From Selaginella moellendorffii (Eukaryota > Plantae > Lycopodiophyta), in the NCBI RefSeq assembly GCF_000143415.4, contig NW_003314277.1, positions 1,687,185 to 1,751,184 of the forward strand: 64,000 nucleotides of DNA. Reading direction: 5' to 3'. The notes under the pieces were generated by a model. The model was not told the origin of the DNA. It saw only the letters and a list, made by a program, of their open reading frames with translations, and made no database searches. The position numbers and the translations under genes are program-made. Numbering within the stretch: the stretch's first letter is position 1; each line of letters begins with the position of its first letter. Shown piece after piece: positions 2,861 to 31,164 of the stretch.

Positions 2861-2873
2861 GGCTCCGATACCA
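2861..2873 (-). promoter_or_regulatory. Primer-binding site, tRNA-iMet type
   Basis: TGGTATCGGAGCC on the minus strand (canonical TGGTATCAGAGC). Confidence 0.85.
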
Positions 2874-13445: not shown

Positions 13446-16130
13446 TGGAGATTGGCCACTTAAGAATGGTTATACAAATCTTCCAGAAGTACCTTTGGGG
13501 ACCGAAAGAGATTTCCAAACATAGACTCCAATTCACCAGAGATCAGTTTCAATAATGTTGACTTCCCAAACAACTGAAATATCAAACATTAAAGCCCAAT
13601 GTTACCAGCAGTATAACATTACTAAGCTAGGCAACTGTTCAAGTTTGAGGCCAAAAGTTTAGGTTTCTAAACAAGACTGAGCGCCTTGGATATCCAAATG
13701 ATGCATCACAAGTCATAGATTATAATATACATACATATATGCTAGAAAAAAATAGAAAATATACCTAAAATCCCTTATGAATTCAAATGCTAAAAGCTGG
13801 AGCACACACAGTTTGGTCAAACTTTTAGTGAAACTTTACATATCCCACTTTTACTATTTTATTTGGACACTTTACGATCAAGGGTTGAGCCCTATTTGAT
13901 AGTGTGAAAATGGAGTGTTGTTGAGTATGCTACCATAAAAAAATAAACACATTATATTGCTACTAGTGTGAGTGTATGGAATATAGAAATGTGCATATCA
14001 ATTACCCCAAAAACCCTAGTTTATATACATGAGTGAATGGTTAAGATTGAAACTAATTTAATAGCTATCAAAATCCCACTATGCTAATATTAATTTACAA
14101 CATTATAGTTGTACATTTGGACCTCACATCATCCCCTCCTCTCGAAATGATGGAAGATAGTCAAAGTGTTGTAGTGGATGCGCCGGGATTTAAAGGAATA
14201 TCAGAAGGAGGTATTGGTGGATTTGTAATTGGTACCAATTATTCTTGATCCCTTTGTATGAAGTGTTTTAGCCACTATATATGCATAATTTTTTATTGGA
14301 TATCATGCTAAATATAGTGCATATGATCATGGGATGAAATTTGGATATACTGTCACCGTGGATCCTTGGAATCTTGGGGGATAAATGATATACTAGGAGG
14401 GCTTAAGAAAGTTTATAAATTATAAATATATTTATAAATTATAAATACAAGATTAATCTAAATAAATAACAACCATTAGATGGTAAAGTATCCTAGAATG
14501 TCTAAACATATTCTTTTTATATCCACTATCTTTCTATAGGTTTGTGTAAGTGATTAAATTTTCCATTCTACTTTAGTTACTTAACTACACTTCCACCCAT
14601 TTGGAAGAGTCTCATTCACAACCTCCATAAGTCCTATTCTAAACTTGGGGTTTGTTAGCCTTGAGAATGGTATCTGTGCCACTCAACTTTTGCACTTGGT
14701 CGAAGTGCTCCACATGTCCGATACCATGATCGACACTCCAAGGTACCACCAACATATCAGCTTGTTACACTAAAGCCATGCCCATTCACCTTGGTCATAC
14801 CAATGGTCCAACACCACTTACATCACAATCCCGTTTCTCAAATATTAGGCCATCCGTCCATGAGTGATCCTCCTAGAGCCACTCCTTAGCATCTTTAGAA
14901 TGCTCACAGATATGGGGAACAACCTTCCCTAATATCCCTTTTTACAATTTCCACCAAGTCCTTTTTCTGTCCATGGCCGTGTTCGCCAACACTGCCACTA
15001 GGACAAGGCCCACAGGCCCACCTACTAAGTCCCAGTGTCCTCAGGGATTTCCTCACTACATGACTGTATCCTTAGTCACTACTCTAGAGGATTACTCCTC
15101 TTCTTTTCCACAGTCTGGGATTTTAAGACAACATTTCAGAACACTGTGGCCTTACACGAGCATCATGGGTACTCTCCCCATCTTCCACCTTTGGATGCCC
15201 TAACTATAGGCTTAGAGCGAGGTTCCATTGAGCCACACTAGGTATCCAAGTAGGTAGTGCCACCCATGCTTCGATTGGGAGTATCGACTATTCGATCTCC
15301 CGGGGGAACTAGAGCTGGCTCTTGGACACTTCATCAAGCTACCCCGCTTGTCTATCCATATTCACTTTAGCTTTGGACTCTTTAGTGGATATATTATCAC
15401 CTAGCACACGGGCATAGCCTTTTTGGGTCACACTAGCTTTTCTGGGTCACACTAGTTTTTCTTGGCCAAACTAGCTCCATTGGGGTCCAACCCCACACTC
15501 ACCCTACTATACTTTTAGAACCCTTTACACTCCCCCGGGGACAATCACTTTTGGCTTTCACCCAACAACCTGTATTAGTATTCGAACTCGGACTCAGACT
15601 CAATCTTTGTTTTGGTCTTGGTCTCAGTCTTGGTCTCGGTCTCAGTCTCGGTTCCATCTCGAACTCCATCTTGAACTCCATCTCGAACTCCATCTCAGGT
15701 CTATCTCAGACTCCATCTTGGACTCCGTCTTGGACTCCATCTCAGACTCATACTTAGATTCGGATTCGGTCTCAGTATCGGTCTCGGTCACGGTCTCGGT
15801 CTCGGTCTCAGTCTCAGTCTCGGTCTCGGTCTCGATCTCGGTCTCCATTCCATCTCGAACTCCATCTCGGACTCCATCTCGGACTCCATCTCGGGTCCAT
15901 CTCAGACTCCATCTTGGACTCCATCTCGGATCTATCTTCGACTCCATCTCGGGTCCATCTCGGACTCCATCTCAGGTCCATCTCAAACTCCATCTTGAAC
16001 TCCATCTCAGACTCCATCTTGGGTCCATCTCGGACTCCATCTCGGGTCCATCTCAAACTCCATCTTGGGTCCATTTTGGATTCCATCTCGGACTCCATCT
16101 CGGGTCCATCTCAGGTCCATCTCGGACTAT

Positions 16131-17281
16131 TGTAAGCCACAATTTTTTCCTTTCCAATTTTCCAGCTTACCTCGTCTATCTGTCTGACACTGCCTTGGCT
16201 TTTGCTAAGTTCCCTCGCCAAGGTTTTCGCCTATGGTACCAACTCTTACTTGGTCCTACTTGGTTTCAGCTACTCACTGCACGAGCAACGGAGCGTTAGC
16301 CATCCATCCACGGATTCCCAATCTCTCCCAATCCCCCTTCCTGGGTTAGACTGGACTTAAGGTTCGGCTACACTCCCTGCAAGCACAAGCAGCCAAGCAC
16401 ACCAAACTTCCAGGTTCCCAACATCCTTTGGTACCACAAGACTTGATCATGGGACCCCCTAAATCCCAAGTCTTGAGTGCAACACTTGCTTCGGGACGCC
16501 GGGGCAAAACACCGTGGCCTAGCGGCCTGGTATGGGTACCTCTACCCCCCCGTTTCCATCCTGAAGGAAGGCCCAAGCCCCTAGGAAGGGCGAGGACCAA
16601 TGAGCCGCATGGTACTCAAGTGGGGCACCATTCCACATGAGTCAGGAGCACCGCAATCAATTTCCCTTTCGGGAGTGGGAGCTGCTCTTGAGCACTTCCT
16701 TGGATGGCCCCTCCAGCACCAACCAAGTCCATACTCACTCCCACCTAAAGCCCCTCGGTCCCAGTCTCAACCTCAAGTCGGTTTGGAAGCCCCACTGAAG
16801 AGTCCCTTCAAAACTGGTTCCTGGACCTCACTATCCCTACTATACTTTTGGAACCCCCTGCAGCCCCCCCCCCCCCCCCCCGGGAGATGCACGCTTTGGG
16901 CTTTCACCCCTTGACCCGTATTAGTATTTGGACTTAGTCTTTGGCTCGATCTTGGACTCGATTTCGGATCCGACTTCGGATTCGGTCTCGGACTCGATCT
17001 CGGACTCGATCTCGAACCCGATCTCGGACCCGACCTCGGACTTGACCTCGGACTCGGTCTCGGACCCGATTTTGGATCTCGGACTCTGTCTCGAACTCGG
17101 TCTCGAACTCGGTCCCCGAGTCAGCCTCGGACTCGATTCCGGACTCTATCTCGAACTCGGTCTCAGAGTCAGTCTTGGACTCGATCTTCGACTTGGTCCC
17201 ATCCGATGAACTCTTTGTCATTTTGGTCATACTTTCGGGGTTCCTTTAGCCTATGACACCTCGGCAAGTTGGTTCCTTACA
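16131..17281 (-). repeat. LTR-2 family solo LTR
   Basis: Reverse complement of 35934-37050, with TG...CA termini and a perfect TSD ACTAT (16126-16130 / 17282-17286). Confidence 0.92.
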
Positions 17282-19439
17282 ACTATCTATGGGTGGTAGA
17301 GTTGTGAGACACAAATCCCAAAGCCCCAAAAGTAGAGTCCGAAATAGAGTCCAAGATGGACCTAAGATGGAGTCTGAGATGGAAAGTTTGATGTCCTCAT
17401 CGAATGATAAACTATTTTATACAGTAACACCAACCTATATTACCCTTTCCATCCTTGGCTCCTAGCCAATATTCATCAATGGTTTGACTGAAGGCTCGCC
17501 ATGCCTTATCCATCCTCTAATGAGCATAGTCTCTTCAACTTAAAGACTCATTAGACCACTTATGGTAGTCCTTCCCCCTTTTGTTTGTTTAATTCATGCT
17601 AAACACATTAGAGACAATATCTCTATTTCAATTTGACTACTCATTCAAGAGTATCCTCGGCCTCTACTAGCATAACCATTGCACTTTGAAACTTTTAATT
17701 TTAACATCTCAAAGTCAATTTCCTAGGTGTCTCTGACACTTGGCATTGCACATGTTGTGCAAACTCCACTTCCCCATTCTAGGAAGTTATTTACTTGAGG
17801 GCAACATCACCTTTTCTATTATTTCGTGCCACTCTAGGCATAAATTTCATTTTTCCATAATTTGTGCTAAGGTTGTTCACAGCCCTATCATTTGGCCATC
17901 TTGCCACTCCCTGCTTTGGAGCTTTCACTTTGCCAAATTAAAGCATTTTAGGAATCCATCCTTGGAAATATATTCCTTTTCCACAATCTGTTAACACCAA
18001 ACATATGAGTGTTCCTCACTTAACTTTTTCATTTGGATTCATGCTAATGATTTTCATGGCCTATTCTTGGCCCTAGTCTTTTGCTCTTATCCTTTGATTG
18101 TTACATTAAGCAACATAGGATCATTACATTTATCCTTGAGGTATCCTTTTGGTTCCATAGCAAAGGCTCTGCTTTGCCAAGTCCAGAAGGTGTTCACCCC
18201 TAGTAAGTCTTTTTAGCATTTTCTGTTATGGGCTTTATGCATGGCCCAACCTAGCGACGTACCCATAAGTCTCTTTCGTAGACTTGCAATACCATTGCAT
18301 TATCGTAGTTCATTTCCCTTATGTGTTTTTCTCACTTGGTCACTTTGACCAAGCCATACTATTATCAATAGTTCAAATCAAGACTTTGAACTAAGAACTT
18401 TATTCTTTAACCTCACAAGGACTTTGTCCTTGTTTTAGCCATAAGACCACTTAGTGATCTAACTTTGACACCTTAACATATTTGCTAATTGGTACTAGGC
18501 TTTCTAAACCTTTAACTTGTTGACCATGACCCCAGGGGCATCCCCCACACTTGGTGGTGCACCCAAGCCAACATTTCTAGCCAAGGGTCCATAGCAATTG
18601 AGACTAGGTGTCCCCATCTCATTCACCACCTTCTTGGTGCCACTTGCACCAAGTGTTTAAGTTAGATATGTTGAGATTTCACACTAAGCAATTTAATCAT
18701 GCATCACGACTTCAAGGCATCCCCTGCTTGACGGTGTGCCTAAGCCAATCTCCTTATTGAGAGTCCATGACCACTGAAAAATGAGTGTTCTCATATTCCA
18801 AACCATCACCACGCTCTAGTGAGTTGGGATTCTAACCCAAACACTAAAGGGTTGAGACTCGAACCTAACCTCTATATATGCATCTACAGATGGCATCATC
18901 CAGGATGCTTAGCATGCCTCCCCAAGCTACTGCACCAACTTATACTTAAAGCATGCTACGAATCACAATTTAGGAATCTAGTTCCTCCAAACTGCCAAGT
19001 CCTCTCACTTGACAAGTTTGTGATCCTGCATAGACTCCTCCATGCTTGGCCCCATAGGTTGCCCCTTTTGAAGTCAACAACTTCAACTGGGGTCTTTGTT
19101 CCCTTAACTTACCAATCTCGCTTAGCATGTCACTTAATTAGTGTAACATGGTTTTCTACATAAGCATGAAAGTCTTTAACCATCGACTTTTGTTAAAAGC
19201 CATCTCTTTGAACACTTGGGAATTACTTCCCCAGCTTTGATAGCCTCGCCTCATGTTAAACTTCAAAACCACACTTCTACGATGCTATTTTGATTTTGTG
19301 CGCTTTATGAACCATTTACACTTATCTTTCTATGTACTAATTTACCTAGAATTGTCTTTGGGAATCTTAAAGGGACTCTGTCCCTTATTTTACTAAGGCA
19401 TTTCCTTTCGCAAGCTTTCAAAGTGCCTTATGGTCTAAC

Positions 19440-22400
19440 TGTGAAACACAAATCCCTAAGCCCCAAAGTGGAGCTGAAAGGGTGTAGTGGCTGAAGTGAA
19501 AGCCAAATGAGTGTAATACGTTTGGACTAAAAACTCCGACTTGAAGAGTCGAGAGCGGGAGTGGAACTCCTATCTGAGTGCTCAAGGAACGAGCATGAAG
19601 CAAGCAATAAGAGAGTCTTTAGAAAAGGGACATAAGAGGACCATTACATGACACGTGGTGGAGTTCAAGATGGAGTCCTAGATGGACCAAGATGGAGTTT
19701 GAGATGGAGTCCGAGATGGACCCGAGATGGAGTCTAAGATGGACCTGAGATGGAGTCCAAGATGGATATGAGATGGAGTCCGAGATGGACCGAGATGGAG
19801 TCCGAGATGGACCGAGATGGAGTCTGAGATAGACCCAAGATGGAGCCGTCCGAGATGGAGCCCGAGATGGAGTCCGAGATGGCCCGAGTGGGAAAAACAC
19901 CTAAGGGAAACGAATTATGTTAATGCGATGGTATAATGAGTCCGAAGAAAGTAGTATCTATAAGAGACCCATGGGAGGGTCATAAAGTTGGGCCGTGGAT
20001 AGAGCCCACAGTAGAAAATGGTTAAGAGACGTATTAAGGATGAACACCCTTTGGACTTGACAAAACAAAGTTTTTGTTATGGAACCAAAAGGATACCTCG
20101 AAAATAGAGGTAGTGATCCTATATTGTTAAGTGCAACAATCAAGGATAGGAGCAAAAGATTAGTGGCTAAGACAAGAGCCATGGGAATTATGGGAAAGAA
20201 TCCAAATGACAAAGTTAAGCAAAAAACACTAATGTATTGGGTGCTAATGGATTATGGGAAAGGCAATGTGTTTCCAAGGATGGATTCCCAATTTCTCCGA
20301 TTTGGCGAAGGTGGAAGCTCTAAGGGAGGGAGCGGTAAAGTAGCCAAATGATAGGGCCATGGACAACCCTAGCACAAATTATAATAACTGGAACTTAGTG
20401 CCAAGGGTGGCACGATATCGAAGAGAGGATGATGGTGCCCTTAAGTAGAGAACTTCTTAGGATGGGGAAGTGGAGTTGCATAATATATGCAATGCAAAGT
20501 GTTAGAGACACTTAGGAAATCGACTATGAGAAGTTCAAATTAAAAGTTCCAAAGTGCAAAGATTATATCAATGGAAACTAAGACTACTCGAGAATGAGTA
20601 GTGGGATTAAGATAGAGAAGGTGTCTCTATCAGGTTTAATGAGAAGTAAACCAATAAAAGGAGAGAACCACCATAAGTGGTCGAATGAGTCTCTAAGTTG
20701 GAGAAACTATGCTTCTTAGAGGATGGGCAAGGCATGGTGAGCCTTCGGTGTCAAACCATTGACAAATATTGGTGAGGTGCCAAGGATGGAAAACGTAATA
20801 TATGTTGGTATTACTTTATAAAATAGTTTATCGTTCGATGAGGACATCGAACTTCGTCTATCAGTGGTGGAGTTGTGAGACACAAATCCCTAAGCCCCAA
20901 AGTGGAGCCAAAAGGGTGCCACGTGGTAGTGGCCAAAGTGAAAGCCAAATGAACATAATATGTTTGGACTAAAAGCTCTGACTTGAAGAGTCAAGAGCAG
21001 GAGTGGAACTCCTATCGAAGTGCTCAAGGAACGAGCATGAAGCAAGCAATAAGAGAGTCTCTAGAAAAGGGACACAAAAGGACCATCACATGATATGTGG
21101 TGGAGTCTGAGATGGAGTCCGAGATGGACCGAGATGGAGTTCGAGATGGAGTTCTAGATGGACTGAGATGGAGTTCGAGATGGACCCAAGATGGAGTCTG
21201 AGATGGAGTTTGAGATGGACCTAAGATGGAGTTCGAGATGGACTTGAGATGGAGTCCGAGATGGACCGAGATGGAGTCCAAGATGGACTTGAGATGGAGC
21301 CCGAGATGGAGTCTGAGATGGACCTGAGATGGAGTCCGAGATGGACCCGAGATGGAGTCCAAGATGGAGTCCGAGATGGACCAAGACGGAGTCCGAGATG
21401 GAGTTTGAGATGGACCAAGAAGGACCCGAGATGGAGTCCAAGGTCGAGACTGAGACCGAGACCGGAACCAAGACTGGAACCGAGATCGAGACTGAGATCA
21501 GGGCCGAGGCCGAGGCTGAGACGAGCTCGAGCTCAAGCCCAAGCCCAAGTCCAAGTCCAAGTCCAAGTCCGAGAGTGAAAGCCCAAAGCATTTGTCTCCC
21601 AGACCTTGGGGGTTTTAGTGAGCTCTAAAAGTATAATAAGGGGAGAACTCCAATAGAGCCAGTTTGGCTAGGAAAGGCCAGTTTGGCCCAGGAAGGCTAT
21701 GCCCAGGTGTTGGGTGATAGGATAACCACTGGGAAGTCCAAGGCTATAGTGAATACGGATTGACAAGTGGGGTAGCTTGGTGAAGTGTTCAAGAGCCAGC
21801 TCTAGTTCCCTTGGGAGATCGAATGGCCGATGCTCCCAGTCCAAATGTGGGTGGCACTACCTACTTGGATACCTGGCGTGGCTCAACGGAACCTCACTCT
21901 AAGCCCATGGCTAGAGCACCAAAAGGCAGAAGGTGGGGAGAGTACCCATGAGGCTCGCATAAGGCTACGGTGTTCTAAAATGTTGTCCCAAAATCCCAAA
22001 TGGTGAAAAGGAAGAGGAGCCATCCTCTAGTGCTGTGACTAAGGATACGGTCACATGGTGAGGAAGTCCTAAAAGACAATGGGACTTAGAGGTTGGGCCT
22101 GCGGGCCTTGTTCCAGTGGTAGTGTTGGCAAACACATCCATGGACAGAACAGGATTTGGTGGGGATTGAAAAAGGGATATGTTGTTCCCCATATTTGCAA
22201 ACATCCTAAGGATGCTAAAGCATGGATCTAGGATGACCACTCATGGAAGTATGGCCTAATCTTTGAGAAATGGGACTACGATGCAGGTGGTGTTAGACCA
22301 CCAGTTTGACCAAGGTGAATGGGCATGGATTTAGCATAACGGGCTGGTATGTCGGTGGTACTTTGGAGTGTCGGTCATGGGATCGGACATGTGAAGTACT

Positions 22401-22558: not shown

Positions 22559-23867
22559 CTAACATGGACAATTTCATACTTTAGACTCTCAATGGCATCC
22601 TGGTTGCTAATAATAATATTTTTTAACATCCATTCAATTCTCCACTCCCAATTTGCATAATCACCCTTGCTTTCAATTCTTATAGTTCAATTCTATCCCT
22701 TTACTACTTGTTTTTTAGCCTTATGCCTTCCCTTTAGTTATTCTCCTCCTGTCTAGGAGGGTAATCTTGCACTTTCTACCATGATTTAGCAAGTATTTTT
22801 AGGGATGAATTTACTCAATAACTTAAGGAGTGGATTTTTAATTTGGATATGCTTACTATGTAATCCCACACACTAGGATTAATGTCGCTATGCATGGGCC
22901 TTTTTATGCCCATTGCTAGCCATGCCAAAATCCCTTTTGGCTTGGTCCAATTCAGATAGACGAACTTCTCTTGTCTTCACATTGGATAACACCTTCTATC
23001 TATTATTCACTAATAACTTAGTCCTTTATGCCTTATCTAATACCCTCATGATACTAAACACCACTTTTTGGTGTTTTAGAGTGTTGAAGTGTCCCAATGA
23101 TGGCCTTCTTTGATAATGAGTATTTCCTTTTTCAACACTAACTTATTATATTGCAACATAAGCAATTTATCCCCCGGAGGGATATATTTAACTTCTTTAT
23201 CCAAACAAAAGTCTTAGGTAATTAATTTCTACCAGTCCAATCAATTAGGTTGCACCTTTTGCTTAGTTGTCTCATAGTTGTCAAGTCCTATAACTCATTG
23301 CTAGTGCTTCCACATCTCCATCATTATTTGGGTCACCACACTCTTAGCTTAGGCTATGCCATTTCCATTTCCATTAGGATTTCTTTTGGCAAAGGGTTTT
23401 CATGAACCAACTAACTTGACTTCAAGGCATCACACCTTGGCACATTTGGTGTCTTCACACCATCAGCTCTACAAGCTTATCTTTACAACACTTTTCACTT
23501 GTGTTTAGATCTTTGCCAAGACTAAAGTAATCGTTTCTCATGCCAACTATCAGTTAACACTGCACTATAGTGTTCACATACAACTCTGCACCAAAGTTGT
23601 TTTCTTCTAGGAACACCTTTCCCATAACTTTAGTATGGGACATTTTGCCATCAATGAGATACCCACTATTTTCATATTTGGATCTTATGATCTTCTTTGT
23701 CCTTTGTAGAGTATGACACACCTTAGTCCAAATGTTTCCACTACATCTTTAAGACCATTCTTTGACTCCACTTAAGTCATCTAACTTTTTGGACTTTGCT
23801 CATTTGACCACCCTTAAAGTCTTAGCCTCCTGGCTATCTTTGAGATGTCAATTCACTAGAATACATT

Positions 23868-26800
23868 TGTAAGTGGCTAATTTTTCCCTTTTACTTTAGT
23901 CACTTAACCACACCTCTGACCATTTGGAGGAGTCTCACTCACAACCTCTATAAGTCAAATTCAGGACTTGGGGCTTGCTAACCCCGAGAATAGCATCCAT
24001 GCCACTCACCTTTAGCACTTGGTCCAAGTGCTCTACGTGTTAAATCCCATGACCAACACCCAAAGGTACTACCAATATATCAACCCGTTATGCTAAGGCC
24101 ATGCCCATTCACCTTTGTCACATTAATGGTCAAATACCACTTGCATCACAATCTTGTCTCTCAAAGCCATAATTTTTTATTGGATATCATGCTAAATATA
24201 GCATATATGATCATGGGATGAAATTTGGATATACTGTCACCGTGGATCCTTGGAATCTTGAGGGATAAATGATATACTATGAGGTAGGTAATGCCACCCA
24301 CACTTGGACGGGGAGCATCGGCCACGATCTCCTGGGGGAACTAGAGCCGGCTCTTGAACACTTCACCAAGCTACCCTGCTTGTCGGTCTATATTCACTCT
24401 AGTCTTGGACTTCCCAATGGTTATCCCATCACCCAACACTTAGGAACAGCCTTCCTAGGCCAAACTAGCCTTTCCTGGCCAAACTACAGTCCTCCCCCTC
24501 ACTATACTTTTGGAGCTCACCAAACCCCCTTGGGTCTGGGAGACGAACGCTTTGGGCTTTCACCCTCTCAGACTCGAACTCGGACTCGGACTCGGACTTG
24601 GACTCGGACTCGGACTTGGACTTGGGCTCGGGCTCGGTCTCAGCCTCGGCCTTGGTCTCGGTCTCGGTCTTGGTCCCGGTCTTGATCTCAGTCCCGGTCT
24701 CGGTCTCGGTCTCGGTCTTGGTCTCGGACTCCATCTCGGATTCCATCTCGGGTCCATCTCGGACTCCATCTTAGACTCCATCTCGGGTCCATCTCAGACT
24801 TCATCTCGGGTCCATCTCGGACTCCATTTCGGGTCCATCTCGGACTCTTTCACATGTCATATGTCGGTCCTATTGTGTCCCTTTCCTAGAGACTCATTTA
24901 TCTTTCACTTCGTGCTTGTTCCTCGAGCACTTCGTTGGGAGTTCCACTCCCACTCTCGACTTTTTCAAGTCGGAGCTTTTAGTCCAAACGTGTTACGCTC
25001 GTTTGACTTTTGCTTTGGCCACTACCACGTAGCGCCCTTTCGGCTCCACTTTGGGGCCTAGGGATTTTGTGTCTCACAACTCCACCACCCATAGACGAAG
25101 TTCGATGCCCTCATCAAACGATAGACTATTTCATAAAGTAATACCAACATGTATTACCTTTCCATCCTTGGCACCTCGCCAATATTTGTCAATGGTTTGA
25201 CACCAAAGGCTCACCATGCCTTGTTCACCCTCTAAGGAGCATAGTCTCTCCAACTTAGAGACTCATTTGACACTTGTGGTGGTTCTCTCCTTTTACTAGT
25301 TTAGTTCTTGCTAAACTTGTTAGAGACACCTTCTCTAACTCAATCCCACTACTCATTCTCGGGTAGTCTCACTTTCCATTGATATAACCCTTGCACTTTG
25401 GAACTTTTAATTTTGACTTCTCGAAGTCAATTTCTTGGGTGTCTCTGACACCTTACGTTGCACATGGTGCAACTCCACTTCCCGTCCTAGGAAGTTCTTT
25501 ATTTGAGGGCACCATCATCCTCTCTTCGATATCGTGCCACCTTTGGCACTAAGTTCCAGTTATCGTAATTCGTGCTAGGGTTGTCCATGGCCCTATCATT
25601 TGGCTACTTTACCACTCCATCCCTTGGAGCTTTCATCTTCGCGAAATCGGGACAATTGAGAACCTATCCTTGGAAACACCTTGCCTTCCCATAATCCGTT
25701 AGCGTTCAACATATTAGTGTTCTTGGACTAACTTTGCCATTTGGCTTCTATCCCATGATTCCCATGACCCTTTTCTTAGCCACTAGTCTTTTACTCCTAT
25801 CCTTGATTGTTGCACCACGCAACACAAGATCACCACCTCCATTCTCGAGGTATCCTTTCAATTCCATAGCAAAGACTTTGTTTTGCCAAGTCCAGAGGGT
25901 GTTCACCCCTAGTACGTCTCCTTAGCATTTTTTGCTGTGGGCTCTATCACAGCCCAACTTTGAGACCCTTCCATGGATCTCTTATAGAGACTACTTTCCT
26001 CGGACTTATTATGCTATTGCATTGACATAGCTCATTTCCCTTAGGTGTTTTTCCCACTTTGTCACCTTGACCAAGCCACACCATCATCAATAGTTCCAAT
26101 CAACACTTTGAACTGAGAACTTTATACCTTAACCTCACAAGGACTTTGTCCTTGTTTTAGCCATAAGATCATATAGTGATCTAACTTTGGCACCTTAACA
26201 GGTTTGCCAATAGATATTAGGTCTTTTAGACCTTTAAATTGTTCACCATAACCCCGGGGGCATCCCCCACACTTGGCGGCACACCTAAGCCAACCCTTCC
26301 GGCCAAGGGTCCATAGCAACTGAGACTAGGTGTCCCCATCTCATTCACTACGTCTTTAGTGCCCTTCGCACCAAAGTGTTCAAGTTAGATACGTTAAACC
26401 ACCCTGAGCAATCTAAATGTGCATCACGACTCCGAGGCATCCCTCGCTTGGTGGTGTGCCCAAACCAGTCTCCTCACTGAGAGTCCATGACCACCGAAAA
26501 ATGAGTGTCTTCATATTCCAAACCATCACCACACCTTAGTGATTTGGGACTTGAACCCAAGCACTAGAGGGTCGGGACTCGAACCCAACCTCCGTATATG
26601 CATTTACAGACGGCATTACACAGGATGCTTAGCGTGACTCCCCACGCTGGTGCACCAACTTATACTTAAAGCGCACTACAGATCACAGCTTAGGAACCTA
26701 ATTCCTCCGCACTGCCAAGTCCTCTGTAGCGCACCTTATCTCTCTCCCCTTAAGCCAACTGGAAAAGGGGCAATTGCTTGATGAGAGAGCCCTTACATTT

Positions 26801-27577
26801 ATCCCCCAAGGTTCCAAAGATCCACGGTGACAGTATATCCAAATCTCATCCCATGATCACATACGCTACATCCTCTCACTTGACATGTCTGTGATCATGC
26901 ATGGACTCCTCCATGCTCGGCCCCATAGGCCACCCTTTTGAAGTTGGCTCCTTCAACTAAGGTATTCGTTCCCCCGATTTGCCAATCTCATTTAGCAAGT
27001 CATTCGGCCACCGTTACATGGTTCATGCATAAGCGTGAAAGTCCTTAACCATTGACTTTCGTTCAAAGCCCTCTCTTTGAACACTCAAGAACTACTTCCC
27101 CAACCTTGATAGCCTCGCCTCATGGCAAGCTTCAAGACCACGCTTCTGTTGCGCCACTCTGATTTTGCGCGTTCTATAAACCATTTACCCTTGGCTAACT
27201 AGGTACTTATCTACTTAGGGGAACGTTCAAGGAACTCTATTTCTTAGTTTGCTAAGGTTTCTCCTTTCGCAAACTTCCCAATTATCATATAGTTCTACAT
27301 GGACAATCCCATGCTTTAGACTCTCTATGGCATCCCAGTCACTAGTAACAACATGCTTGAACACCCACTTAATTCTCCACTCCCAACTTGCATAACCACC
27401 CTTGATCATGCCTGTCAATTCCTATAGTTCGGTTCTATCCCTTTATTACTTGCCTTTTGGCCTCATACATTTTCTTCCGTTATTCTCCTCCAAACTAGGA
27501 AGATAGCTTTGCACTTTCTACCATGCCTTGACAAGTATTCATAGGGATGAACCTACCTGACAGCCTAGGGAGTAGTG
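23868..27577 (-). mobile_element. LTR-1 family element E: 3' LTR (23868-25078), PPT and truncated internal region
   Basis: LTR termini match copy B. ACTCCACCACCC at 25079 is the reverse complement of the PPT. Confidence 0.85.
26725..26870 (-). repeat. LTR-3 family short solo LTR (146 bp)
   Basis: Inverted termini TGTAGCG...CGCTACA and a perfect TSD TCCTC. Absent from the homologous site in element C (~19003). Confidence 0.9.
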
Positions 27578-30440
27578 TCAACTATCAACTATTAGATGAT
27601 AGAATAAAAAAAAAAAGCAGTGAAGAAAGCAGAGACCTTAGCAAGTTTGTCTAACAGGGAGGTAATCGAGAAAGATGCAGATCAAAAGAAAGCAGTGAAG
27701 AAAGCAGCTAAGAAGAAAGCAAACGATCACCTCTACAATATCTCAGTGGAGGAAGTGGTGATGGCAAAGAGTGTTGTGAAGTAGAAGTGCATTGTGTGCC
27801 ATCCTTGAGGCACACCTTCTTGTGTTTAGGTGCTCACTTTCAGCATTTATCAGTGACCGCACAGGAGTATAGCACCATATTGACTTGGAGCCAAGAGTTT
27901 CTTCTATCACTTGGCCGATTATATGCATGACACGAGACAAACGTGAAATTGTAAACTCCATGGTCGAGGATCTTCTTCAGCAAGGGATGATCTTTGAGAA
28001 CACTAGTGCGTTTGCATCCCCGGTGCTTCTAGTTTTGAAGAAGGATGGCACATGGCAACTGTGCGTGGATTATCGAGTGCTGAATAAGGGACAATGTCAT
28101 GCTAAGTTTTTCAGCAAGATAGATTATCAGATCAGGGTGGCAGCTGCAGGTCAACATAAAACAACATTTTGGACACACAGGGGGCTTTTTGAATTTGTGT
28201 AATGCCTTTTGGCTTGTCTAATGCCCCTGCTACCTTTCAGGCCACATTCCTCTTCAAGTTCGTTGTAGTTTTCTTTGATGATAGACTTATCTGTTCTTGG
28301 CACAGATGTTCTTCAGCTATTCTTGGCATATCTCAACCGTATTACTAATAGCACTTATTTGGATCAGCCATCAACTACCCGTTGGAAACTTTGAAACCCC
28401 AGATGTGTGATCTCAGTTATACCGAAGTTACACTTGGATAATTTTGCCACCATGCCATGCTGTTTGAGTACAAGTGGCTTGAACCTTCATCATTGAAGCA
28501 ACTTCAAGCATTTTTGGGCTTTGCTAACTACCTTCGCAAGTTTGTGCAGCACTTTACATCAATAGTAGCTCCTCTTACAGATATCATTCACTCATCCAAC
28601 TTCTCTTGGTTTGAAGCTGCTCAAAGTTCATTTCAAGCCTTGAAGGAACAAATTCTAGCAGCTCCAGCCTCGCTCTTCTAGATTTTTCAAAGGAGTTCAT
28701 CGTGGAAATTGATGCTTTGGACGTGGGAGTGGGAGGTATACAACTTACAGTTTATTGCCTTTGAGAGTCGCTGATTTTCTCTTGTGGAATCCCGCATGGC
28801 CGTCTATGAACAAGAGATGACAACGGTGCTTCATGTTATTCGAAAGTGGCACCACTATCTTTCTTTGTGTCACTTTTGCCTACGTGTTGATCATCTTAGT
28901 CTATGTTTTCTTTTGGACTAGAATCATCTCCAACAAGAAGCAACGTCATTGGATTGAGGATCTCCAATCACTTGACTTTACCATTGAGTATAAGCCAGGT
29001 AATTTCAACATCATTCCTAACGCATTTTCTTGCATGTTTGCAAAACCAAAAGGATCTGCAATGTATGATGTTTCCCGCCAGCAACCCGAGTTTCTGCAGG
29101 CAATTCGGGATACATATCTTGAGGATCCAACTCTTGCCTCTGCTTGTCAGACGTTATCTGCTGGCAACCCGTATCCAAAGTTCATACTAGATGACGGTCT
29201 CTTATGGCGGAAAAGATGCCCAGTTTTGAGTGGCAGACATGACCTCCAACGTCAAGTTTTTCGTGAATGCCATTCTAGTTTTGTTGCAGGTCATCCAGGC
29301 GGGAATGCAGAAGAGAAGCGGGTTTTCGGTGATCAAAACCAGGTGATCAAAACCCAGGTGATCAAACCCAGGTGATCTCGGTGATCAAAACCATGTTTTA
29401 TTGGAAGGGGATCCAGAAGGAGGTGAAGTGATGGGTTTGTGAATGCTTGGTGTGTCAGCAGACAAAGCATGAGACGGTTCCAAATCCAGGGTTGCTTCAT
29501 CCTCTTCTTCGCTAATGGCCCATTTGACAGCATTAGTATGGATTTCTTCATGGGATTGCCATTGGTTCGGATCGCTTCTCCAAAGTTGGTCGTTTTATTC
29601 CCAACAAAATCAACAGCGTCAGCTAAGGATATTGCAGAGCTTTTCTGCTCTGAAGTTGTTTGTTTCCATGGATTGCCTCGCAAGATTGTTTCAGACAGGG
29701 ATCCAAAGTTTCTCAGTGTCTCTGGCACCAACTCTTCCAGTCTATGGGCGTCAAGCTTTCCTTCAGTTCAGCATCCCACCCTCAGTTAGATGGGCAAACT
29801 GAAAGGACAAATCAAACACATATTTACGCAGCTACACTCTGGACTGTCCATCCTCATGGCTCAGGTGGCTTCCTTTTGCGGAGTTCGCTTAAACACTTCT
29901 TGCCATGCTACTTTGGGAGTTTCACCTTATTCAGTGTTCTATGGACAACAAGTACACAAGTTTCCTTTTCCTTCTGCAGAATGTACAGAACCATCGGTGA
30001 CTGAGTATCTCCAGACACTCTTAACTTGATCCATCAACGTCTCGGGACACTATGAAAGGATATGCTGATCAACACTGCTCTACACGGACTTTTGAGGTGG
30101 GAGACTATGCCTACATTCGTTTTCGGCCACAGCAATACACTCTGGGTCGGAGAGAATCACCACGATTGAAGTTTCATCCACGATCTTTTGGTCCATCGTT
30201 GTTCAAGAAAAGATCAACGAGGTGGCATTCTGTTTGAAGCTTCTGGCCTCTGTGTCCTTCTGCTTCAGTCCACTTCCAGAAGTTTTGTTTGAGGATAAAC
30301 AGTTGTTGGCTCCAGAGCAGATCCTGCAGGTTGATGTACACCAACTTCGGCATCGTGTAGTTCCTTGTTTCCTCGTCCAGTGGCAAGGTACTAGCACTGA
30401 GACAGACTCATGGATCTCTCCAAATCCAGGACCTCTTCCA

Positions 30441-30675
30441 TGTTGAAAAATGGATCTGGACAAGCCGGGGATTGAAACCCAGGACCTCCTACACCAATGT
30501 CAAGTGCTCTACCACTGAGCTACCTGCCCTGGTTGTGTGCATGTTCAGCTTAGTTCTAACACTCCCCCATAATCTGAACATGCCACACATCCTGGTTGTG
30601 CCCCCCTAAGCTGCACACGCCACGCCACACATCCCTACCTGCCCAGTCCATGCCTACCACAGCTTAGTTCTAACA
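30441..30675 (-). mobile_element. Miniature LTR element (TRIM-like) with a tRNA-derived LTR
   Basis: Perfect TSD TTCCA (30436-30440 / 30676-30680). TGTTAGAACTAAGCTG occurs at 30675 and again at 30561. PPT GGGGGAG at 30562-30568. The LTR at 30441-30561 ends TCAACA. Confidence 0.85.
30457..30529 (-). ncRNA. tRNA-like sequence inside the TRIM LTR (not a functional tRNA)
   Basis: GGGCAGG TA GCTCAGTGGTAGAGC A CTTGACATTGGTGTAGGAG GTC CTGGGTTTCAATCCCCGG CTTGTCC A. The acceptor, D and T stems pair, and A-box/B-box-like motifs are present. The anticodon arm is non-canonical. Confidence 0.8.
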
Positions 30676-31164
30676 TTCCAGTGGAACCCGGTGTTTCTGA
30701 GGACAGAGTTCAGTCTCTACATGTGAGGGGGTGATGTTAGGAATTGGTTCACACTAGGACAGTATGGATAAAGCGGGACAAGGCGAGTGTACAGTAGGTT
30801 CTTCTTTCTATGTCTTATTTCTCTTCTTTTCCTTCCTTTTTGATTGGTCAATTGTATCGATATGTTTTGATCATATTCTGCCACGCCCAGAAGGGTATGT
30901 TCGACCGCTTAAGTATGCCATGGATGGTATATGGTCTTCTTCAAGTTTTTGTAAGCAGGTATTCCTGTGCCGCTCACAATGACGTTCTGGCAGCCACGAA
31001 AGCTGGCGATACATAACCTGCCATGGTAATCTGCAAAACGAAACAAAAGTAAAGCGAAACAATCTTCCTCACAACCCACCTTTGGATCCATGTCTGGTGT
31101 AGCTCGAAACCATCCAACTACCGTTACGAGGCGCCGATCCTTCCCAGCATCCGACCAGCATTCC

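Follow-up and report, generated by a model that had tools for sequence, protein, structure and literature searches.

A very probable defective and rearranged copy of the LTR retrotransposon Helenus-1_SMo in Selaginella moellendorffii

The TRIMs known as Cassandra carry in their LTRs a Pol III promoter derived from 5S rRNA. In the Helenus/TRIMp3 class of TRIMs, the sequence inside the LTRs is instead derived from a tRNA, and Helenus-1_SMo, a Repbase family of Selaginella moellendorffii described by Kojima (2024, Biology 13:119, PMC10886601), is a member of this class. As published, it has an LTR of 120 bp, an internal region of 85 bp and a TSD of 5 bp (PMC10886601). Pol III transcription of Helenus was put forward by Kojima (2024, PMC10886601) as a proposal, which by its own statement was not validated.

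The element considered here is an insert of 235 bp at positions 30441 to 30675, in minus-strand orientation, of the window, by which we mean the whole 64,000-nt stretch of S. moellendorffii DNA that was analysed. On the minus strand, the insert runs from TGTTAG to CAACA; in the element's sense, it starts with TGTTAGAAC and ends with TTTTTCAACA. It is flanked by two identical copies of TTCCA (direct reading), the left one at 30436 to 30440 and the right one at 30676 to 30680. Without mismatch, the 16-mer TGTTAGAACTAAGCTG is found at only two places in the window, 30660 to 30675 and 30546 to 30561. The second occurrence opens a unit of 121 bp that reaches the end of the insert (30441 to 30561, minus strand) and begins and ends with TGTTAG...CAACA. 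Directly 5′ of this unit, abutting TGTTAG, lies the polypurine tract ATGGGGGAG (30562 to 30570, minus strand). Both the consensus match and the contigs of other copies identify the unit as a complete 3′ LTR. Searches of the 64-kb window with the LTR core, the terminus motif and the A-box region, and a self-BLAST with the insert, gave no further copy of the element, and no uninterrupted paralogous target site was found within the window. A metagenome scan with a 31-nt query from the U3/tRNA junction also gave no match, metagenomes being uninformative on a plant genome.

How closely does the insert agree with the published family? The consensus was taken from Data S1 of PMC10886601 and compared with the window segment by segment, as search patterns of 26 to 60 nt; as a control for chance, the window was shuffled 100 times per segment, with 0 matches in each. 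All matches lie on the minus strand. Positions 1 to 60 of the consensus LTR correspond to 30502 to 30561 with 1 mismatch, positions 61 to 86 to 30476 to 30501 with 3 mismatches, and positions 87 to 120 to 30441 to 30474 with 2 mismatches. Within the internal region, consensus positions 27 to 68 are found at 30621 to 30662 with 0 mismatches and positions 56 to 85 at 30562 to 30591 with 3. The remaining segment, internal positions 1 to 26, consists of the PBS TGGTATCGGAGC and the bases following it, and found no match anywhere in the window with 3 mismatches allowed, in keeping with an earlier note on this DNA, made from the letters alone, that no PBS is visible. Overall, six substitutions and one inserted T separate the LTR from the consensus, such that 114 of 120 positions are identical, plus one indel. 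All six substitutions are C:G to T:A transitions, and five of them stand in CG or CHG contexts as read from the consensus; this pattern would be the usual decay of a methylated plant repeat.

Because of this sequence identity, we file the insert under Helenus-1_SMo, and we consider it very probable that it is a defective, rearranged copy of this published non-autonomous LTR retrotransposon. Two features of the family are missing from it. Instead of two LTRs flanking the internal portion, there is a 5′ LTR of which the first 16 nt only are present, and there is no PBS next to it. From the letters, the earlier note had recognised a 235-bp insert with a perfect 5-bp TSD, TG...CA ends, a PPT and a 121-bp LTR, all of which are present, and had read it as a TRIM-type LTR retroelement with a tRNA-derived, Pol III-type module in its LTR, a reading that the consensus match supports. 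It also suspected that the class was the known Helenus, and rightly so, as the retained segments all match the Helenus-1_SMo consensus. The novelty that it implied for the family does not stand, since the Helenus/TRIMp3 class and the family Helenus-1_SMo are both already known, the latter through the 2024 description itself (PMC10886601).

The tRNA-like module of the 3′ LTR comprises 73 nt (30457 to 30529, minus strand) and is recognised by Rfam model RF00005 over the full model, positions 1 to 71, with a score of 39.2 bits, the gathering threshold being 29 (E = 7.3e-07 for a 501-bp region). Its A box, TAGCTCAGTGG, is intact (30512 to 30522, minus strand). The B-box-like sequence GGTTTCAATCC (30469 to 30479, minus strand) is one nucleotide longer than the consensus GGTTCAATCC through an extra T, inserted at about 30475, that changes GGTTC to GGTTTC. 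On the 3′ side of the module is a run of five T (30446 to 30450, minus strand), a T4 in the consensus, which is the sole run of at least four T in the element and a putative Pol III terminator. The module is directly preceded by ACAACCA, and CAA triplets just upstream are typical of the start regions of plant tRNA genes.

ARAGORN does not call the module at 30457 to 30529 as a tRNA, the Rfam alignment shows poor pairing in the anticodon arm, and as free RNA the module folds no more stably than shuffled sequence (MFE z = 0.34); on these grounds, a functional tRNA gene was rejected. The 73-bp tRNA fold proposed before our analysis is upheld as a match to the full Rfam model and weakened by the silence of ARAGORN and by the z-score. 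For annotation, the Rfam tRNA match at 30457 to 30529 should be masked as a transposon-derived pseudo-tRNA. Over the whole window, ARAGORN calls just one gene, a genuine tRNA-Pro(TGG) at 46091 to 46164 (minus strand), which scores 61.1 bits with Rfam and is the only canonical tRNA there.

The 5′ end of the insert is more complicated. Its identity to the 3′ LTR ends after nucleotide 16, so that TGTTAGAACTAAGCTG at 30660 to 30675 (minus strand) is the whole of the 5′ LTR remnant, and the next base is position 30 of the internal region. The trinucleotide CTG at this junction is present in the family both at LTR 14 to 16 and at internal positions 27 to 29. A single 133-bp deletion at this 3-nt microhomology has removed LTR positions 17 to 120 (104 nt) together with internal positions 1 to 29 (29 nt), and the tRNA-iMet-type PBS was lost with the latter. 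The earlier note had seen here a second LTR reduced to about 41 bp and diverged; only the 16 nt are LTR, and the 39 nt that follow belong to the internal region of the family. The misreading is explained by the decamer GGGCAGGTAG, which the published consensus has in its internal portion as well as in its LTR, and which is no LTR remnant at this place.

After such a deletion, an internal part of 56 nt would be expected, versus the 98 nt that remain. The order of the consensus positions is 30 to 68, a tandem duplication of the 5 nt GCGTG, 69 to 83, then CACAACCAG(G), identical to LTR 25 to 33/34, and finally 56/57 to 85 again. The internal region therefore contains a 42-nt partial duplication enclosing an LTR snippet of 9–10 nt. 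The first duplicate copy, with the GCGTG duplication, occupies 30601 to 30659; the snippet, recognised by eye and a putative remnant of a middle LTR, occupies 30592 to 30600; and the second duplicate copy, which forms the 3′ end of the internal region and includes the polypurine tract, occupies 30562 to 30591 (all on the minus strand). When the two overlapping stretches of internal sequence are aligned with each other, 4 of 23 positions are different.

Additional information comes from public sequencing runs. Logan contigs of four runs from the same organism (X1, X2, X4 and X5), whose nature as RNA or DNA is uncertain, were aligned to the window. A contig of X1 covers 30548 to 31000 without any difference, which speaks against an obvious assembly error in the rearranged part and backs the assembly there and across the right junction of the insert. 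X4 and X5 yielded contigs (682 and 449 nt, depth 52–57) that align to exactly 30441 to 30561, with flanks unrelated to the window: ...CAGTATT precedes the LTR and GTATTGTG... follows it, so that GTATT stands on both sides. These contigs represent a second copy, a solo LTR that has the same boundaries and a separate 5-bp TSD. A second TSD at these boundaries gives independent support for an integrase-type insertion and for the limits of the LTR. A contig of X2 shows yet another flank at 30561. The X4/X5 copy is without the T inserted into the B box of the insert, and at 30496, 30497, 30500 and 30503 the other copies have the consensus letter, so the differences of the insert at these four positions are its own mutations.

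The X4 and X5 runs are guessed to be RNA; if they are, the solo LTR forms part of a transcript that is abundant and probably made by Pol II. Words of the LTR (sampled 31-mers) also occur in runs of six studies of the same organism and in runs labelled with two other organisms; relatives may possess the family too, or samples may have been mislabelled or mixed.

What is the origin of the extended internal region? Template switching during reverse transcription may have produced the internal duplication, as one possible route. We also hold it possible, while leaning against it, that the extended region defines a propagating Helenus-1_SMo subfamily, about 370 bp long and not described so far, or that it is what is left of an L3I2 tandem form. 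If so, it would show diversification of TRIMp3 by template switching between LTR and internal sequences. Under the first of these proposals, which we entertain only tentatively, the longer internal region, with its junction GGGGGGCACAACCAGGATG, marks a distinct propagated subfamily of about 370 bp from which the insert differs by the 133-bp 5′ deletion alone. Restoring the deleted 133 bp does give a length of about 368 bp, a canonical copy having 325 bp, and the divergence between the two duplicates exceeds that between the LTR and the consensus, which suggests that the duplication is old. However, the stretch from 30562 to 30660 is covered only by the contig of this locus itself, a weak piece of evidence given that the four runs contain little sequence.

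It is less tempting to propose a decayed tandem array with three LTRs (L3I2), in which three separate deletions took most of the first and middle LTRs and both PBSs. L3I2 is the commonest tandem form of TRIMs in plants (Gao et al. 2016, PMC4717578), and the 9–10-nt stretch identical to LTR 25 to 33/34 does lie between two partial internal regions, as the residue of a middle LTR would. Nevertheless, that match is short, no intact L3I2 copy of Helenus-1_SMo was seen, and three independent deletions are needed versus one event for template switching. We judge this array unlikely.

How would an element of this family be transcribed and moved? In the intact family, according to the model of Kojima (2024, PMC10886601), Pol III would be recruited by the A and B boxes that the 5′ LTR carries in its tRNA-like module. 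By analogy with Cassandra, the transcript would start at this module, continue past the weak T4 that follows it and terminate at the same T run in the 3′ LTR. The tRNA-like segment of about 80 nt would then correspond to R, LTR positions 1 to 32 to U3 and the last few nucleotides to U5, with Gag, RT and integrase supplied in trans by an autonomous element. Since the T4 of the 5′ LTR precedes the PBS, a weak terminator would have to be passed before a productive genomic RNA could be made, and this requirement is a weak point of the published Pol III model. What the analysis shows is an integrase-type insertion, from 5-bp TSDs at two copies of the family, the LTR/PPT architecture and a tRNA-derived module whose A box is intact. 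The insert was integrated antisense into the 3′ end of a decayed Ty3/gypsy pol by an LTR-retrotransposon integrase, with duplication of the 5 bp TTCCA.

Because the 5′ promoter module and the PBS are lost and the remaining B box carries an insertion, the insert is immobile and unable to undergo normal reverse transcription. From its remaining 3′ LTR, a short tRNA-like Pol III transcript could at most arise, from a B box that the insertion would weaken. As a dead derivative of a published family, the insert matters little in itself, and its main value is for annotation.

The host of the insert is a decayed, frame-shifted, chromovirus-like Ty3/gypsy pol at 27873 to 30440 (plus strand), recognised by weak Pfam hits and by translations. 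The hits to RVT_1, RT_RNaseH_2, Integrase_H2C2 and Chromo are collinear, each below its gathering score, and the apparent domain order is that of a Ty3/gypsy chromovirus. The Helenus copy is antisense to this pol and lies just past its chromodomain-like end (...VQWQGTSTETDSW...). Some 55 nt downstream of the insert, at about 30726 to 30744, the host reads GAGGGGGTGA and then TGTTAGGAA, a possible PPT and LTR start; a matching 5′ LTR, that is, the second LTR of the host element, was not found in the window.

Could this host be the autonomous partner of Helenus-1_SMo? For plant Helenus, the literature knows of none, and the host junction GAGGGGGTGA/TGTTAGGAA resembles the Helenus junction AGGGGGGAG/TGTTAGAAC, with TGTTAG after a G-rich tract in both. 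We find the idea very improbable nonetheless: the two PPT/LTR junctions differ at 5 of 17 positions and are not matched by a search with 3 mismatches, the LTR boundaries of the host are putative with no matching 5′ LTR in the window, and the PBS variant is also present at other elements of the window and so does not discriminate. An exact TGGTATCGGAGC is found at 2862 to 2873 (minus strand), where it comes after ...CGTTAGA and continues as CATGCCTGG (in Helenus, TATGGTTGG); this site looks like the point at which the 5′ LTR of another LTR retrotransposon meets the PBS, and the body of that element would extend beyond the start of the window. A partial one, TGGTATCGGA, is found within 14715 to 14726 (minus strand), matching 10 of 12 positions at 14717 to 14726. 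The recurrence of TGGTATCGGAGC at these sites indicates a common iMet-type PBS of the genome, and it is no pointer to a partner.

Long arrays with a period of 12 nt (and of 23 nt), composed of CTCGGTCTCGGA or GGACTCCATCTC and their reverse complements, are located in the window at 15569 to 17206, 19701 to 21527, 24555 to 24870 and 36003 to 36319. They are embedded in two repeat copies that are about 77–84% identical (15293 to 19417 plus 22562 to 22831, versus 24325 to 27573), and they are probably included in the 5′ part of the retroelement family to which the host pol belongs.

Since a T run comes after a tRNA-like module that has A and B boxes, one might think of a common SINE derived from a tRNA, or of a tRNA pseudogene flanked by repeats through chance. 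We give this explanation practically no weight and regard it as refuted by the consensus match and the TSD of the second copy, as the tRNA-like part is at the 3′ end of the insert rather than forming a 5′ head, the insert ends in CAACA with no poly(A) or simple-repeat tail, the TSD is fixed at 5 bp in two independent copies, a PPT and TG...CA LTR ends accompany near-identity to a published TRIM consensus, and ARAGORN makes no tRNA call. The insert can be compared, as a Helenus-1_SMo copy, with the systems to which it has some likeness.

With the tRNA-derived SINEs (SINE2), it shares its short length, its lack of coding sequence and a tRNA-derived module with A and B boxes as the presumed promoter. 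However, SINEs are mobilised by LINEs and have a 5′ tRNA head, an A-rich or simple-repeat tail and TSDs of variable length, whereas the insert has LTRs, a PPT and a fixed 5-bp TSD. From Cassandra, Helenus-1_SMo is separated by the absence of any sequence relationship and by the source of its module, a tRNA rather than 5S, which provides a type 2 promoter with A and B boxes; furthermore, Pol III transcription has been shown for Cassandra, not for Helenus. In agreement with this, a permissive Rfam scan of 30300 to 30800 returns the tRNA family only, with no 5S rRNA-derived sequence. The tandemly arrayed TRIMs (TA-TRIM, L3I2; PMC4717578) resemble the insert in having an LTR fragment between two internal segments, but the insert keeps only 9–10 nt of the putative middle LTR. 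The closest system is Helenus-1_SMo itself. Relative to it, the insert is without 104 nt of the 5′ LTR and without the PBS, and it has gained the 42-nt partial internal duplication and an extra T in the B box, with T5 where the family has T4; in its LTR sequence, LTR termini, tRNA-like module, PPT, internal sequence and 5-bp TSD, it is like the published family.
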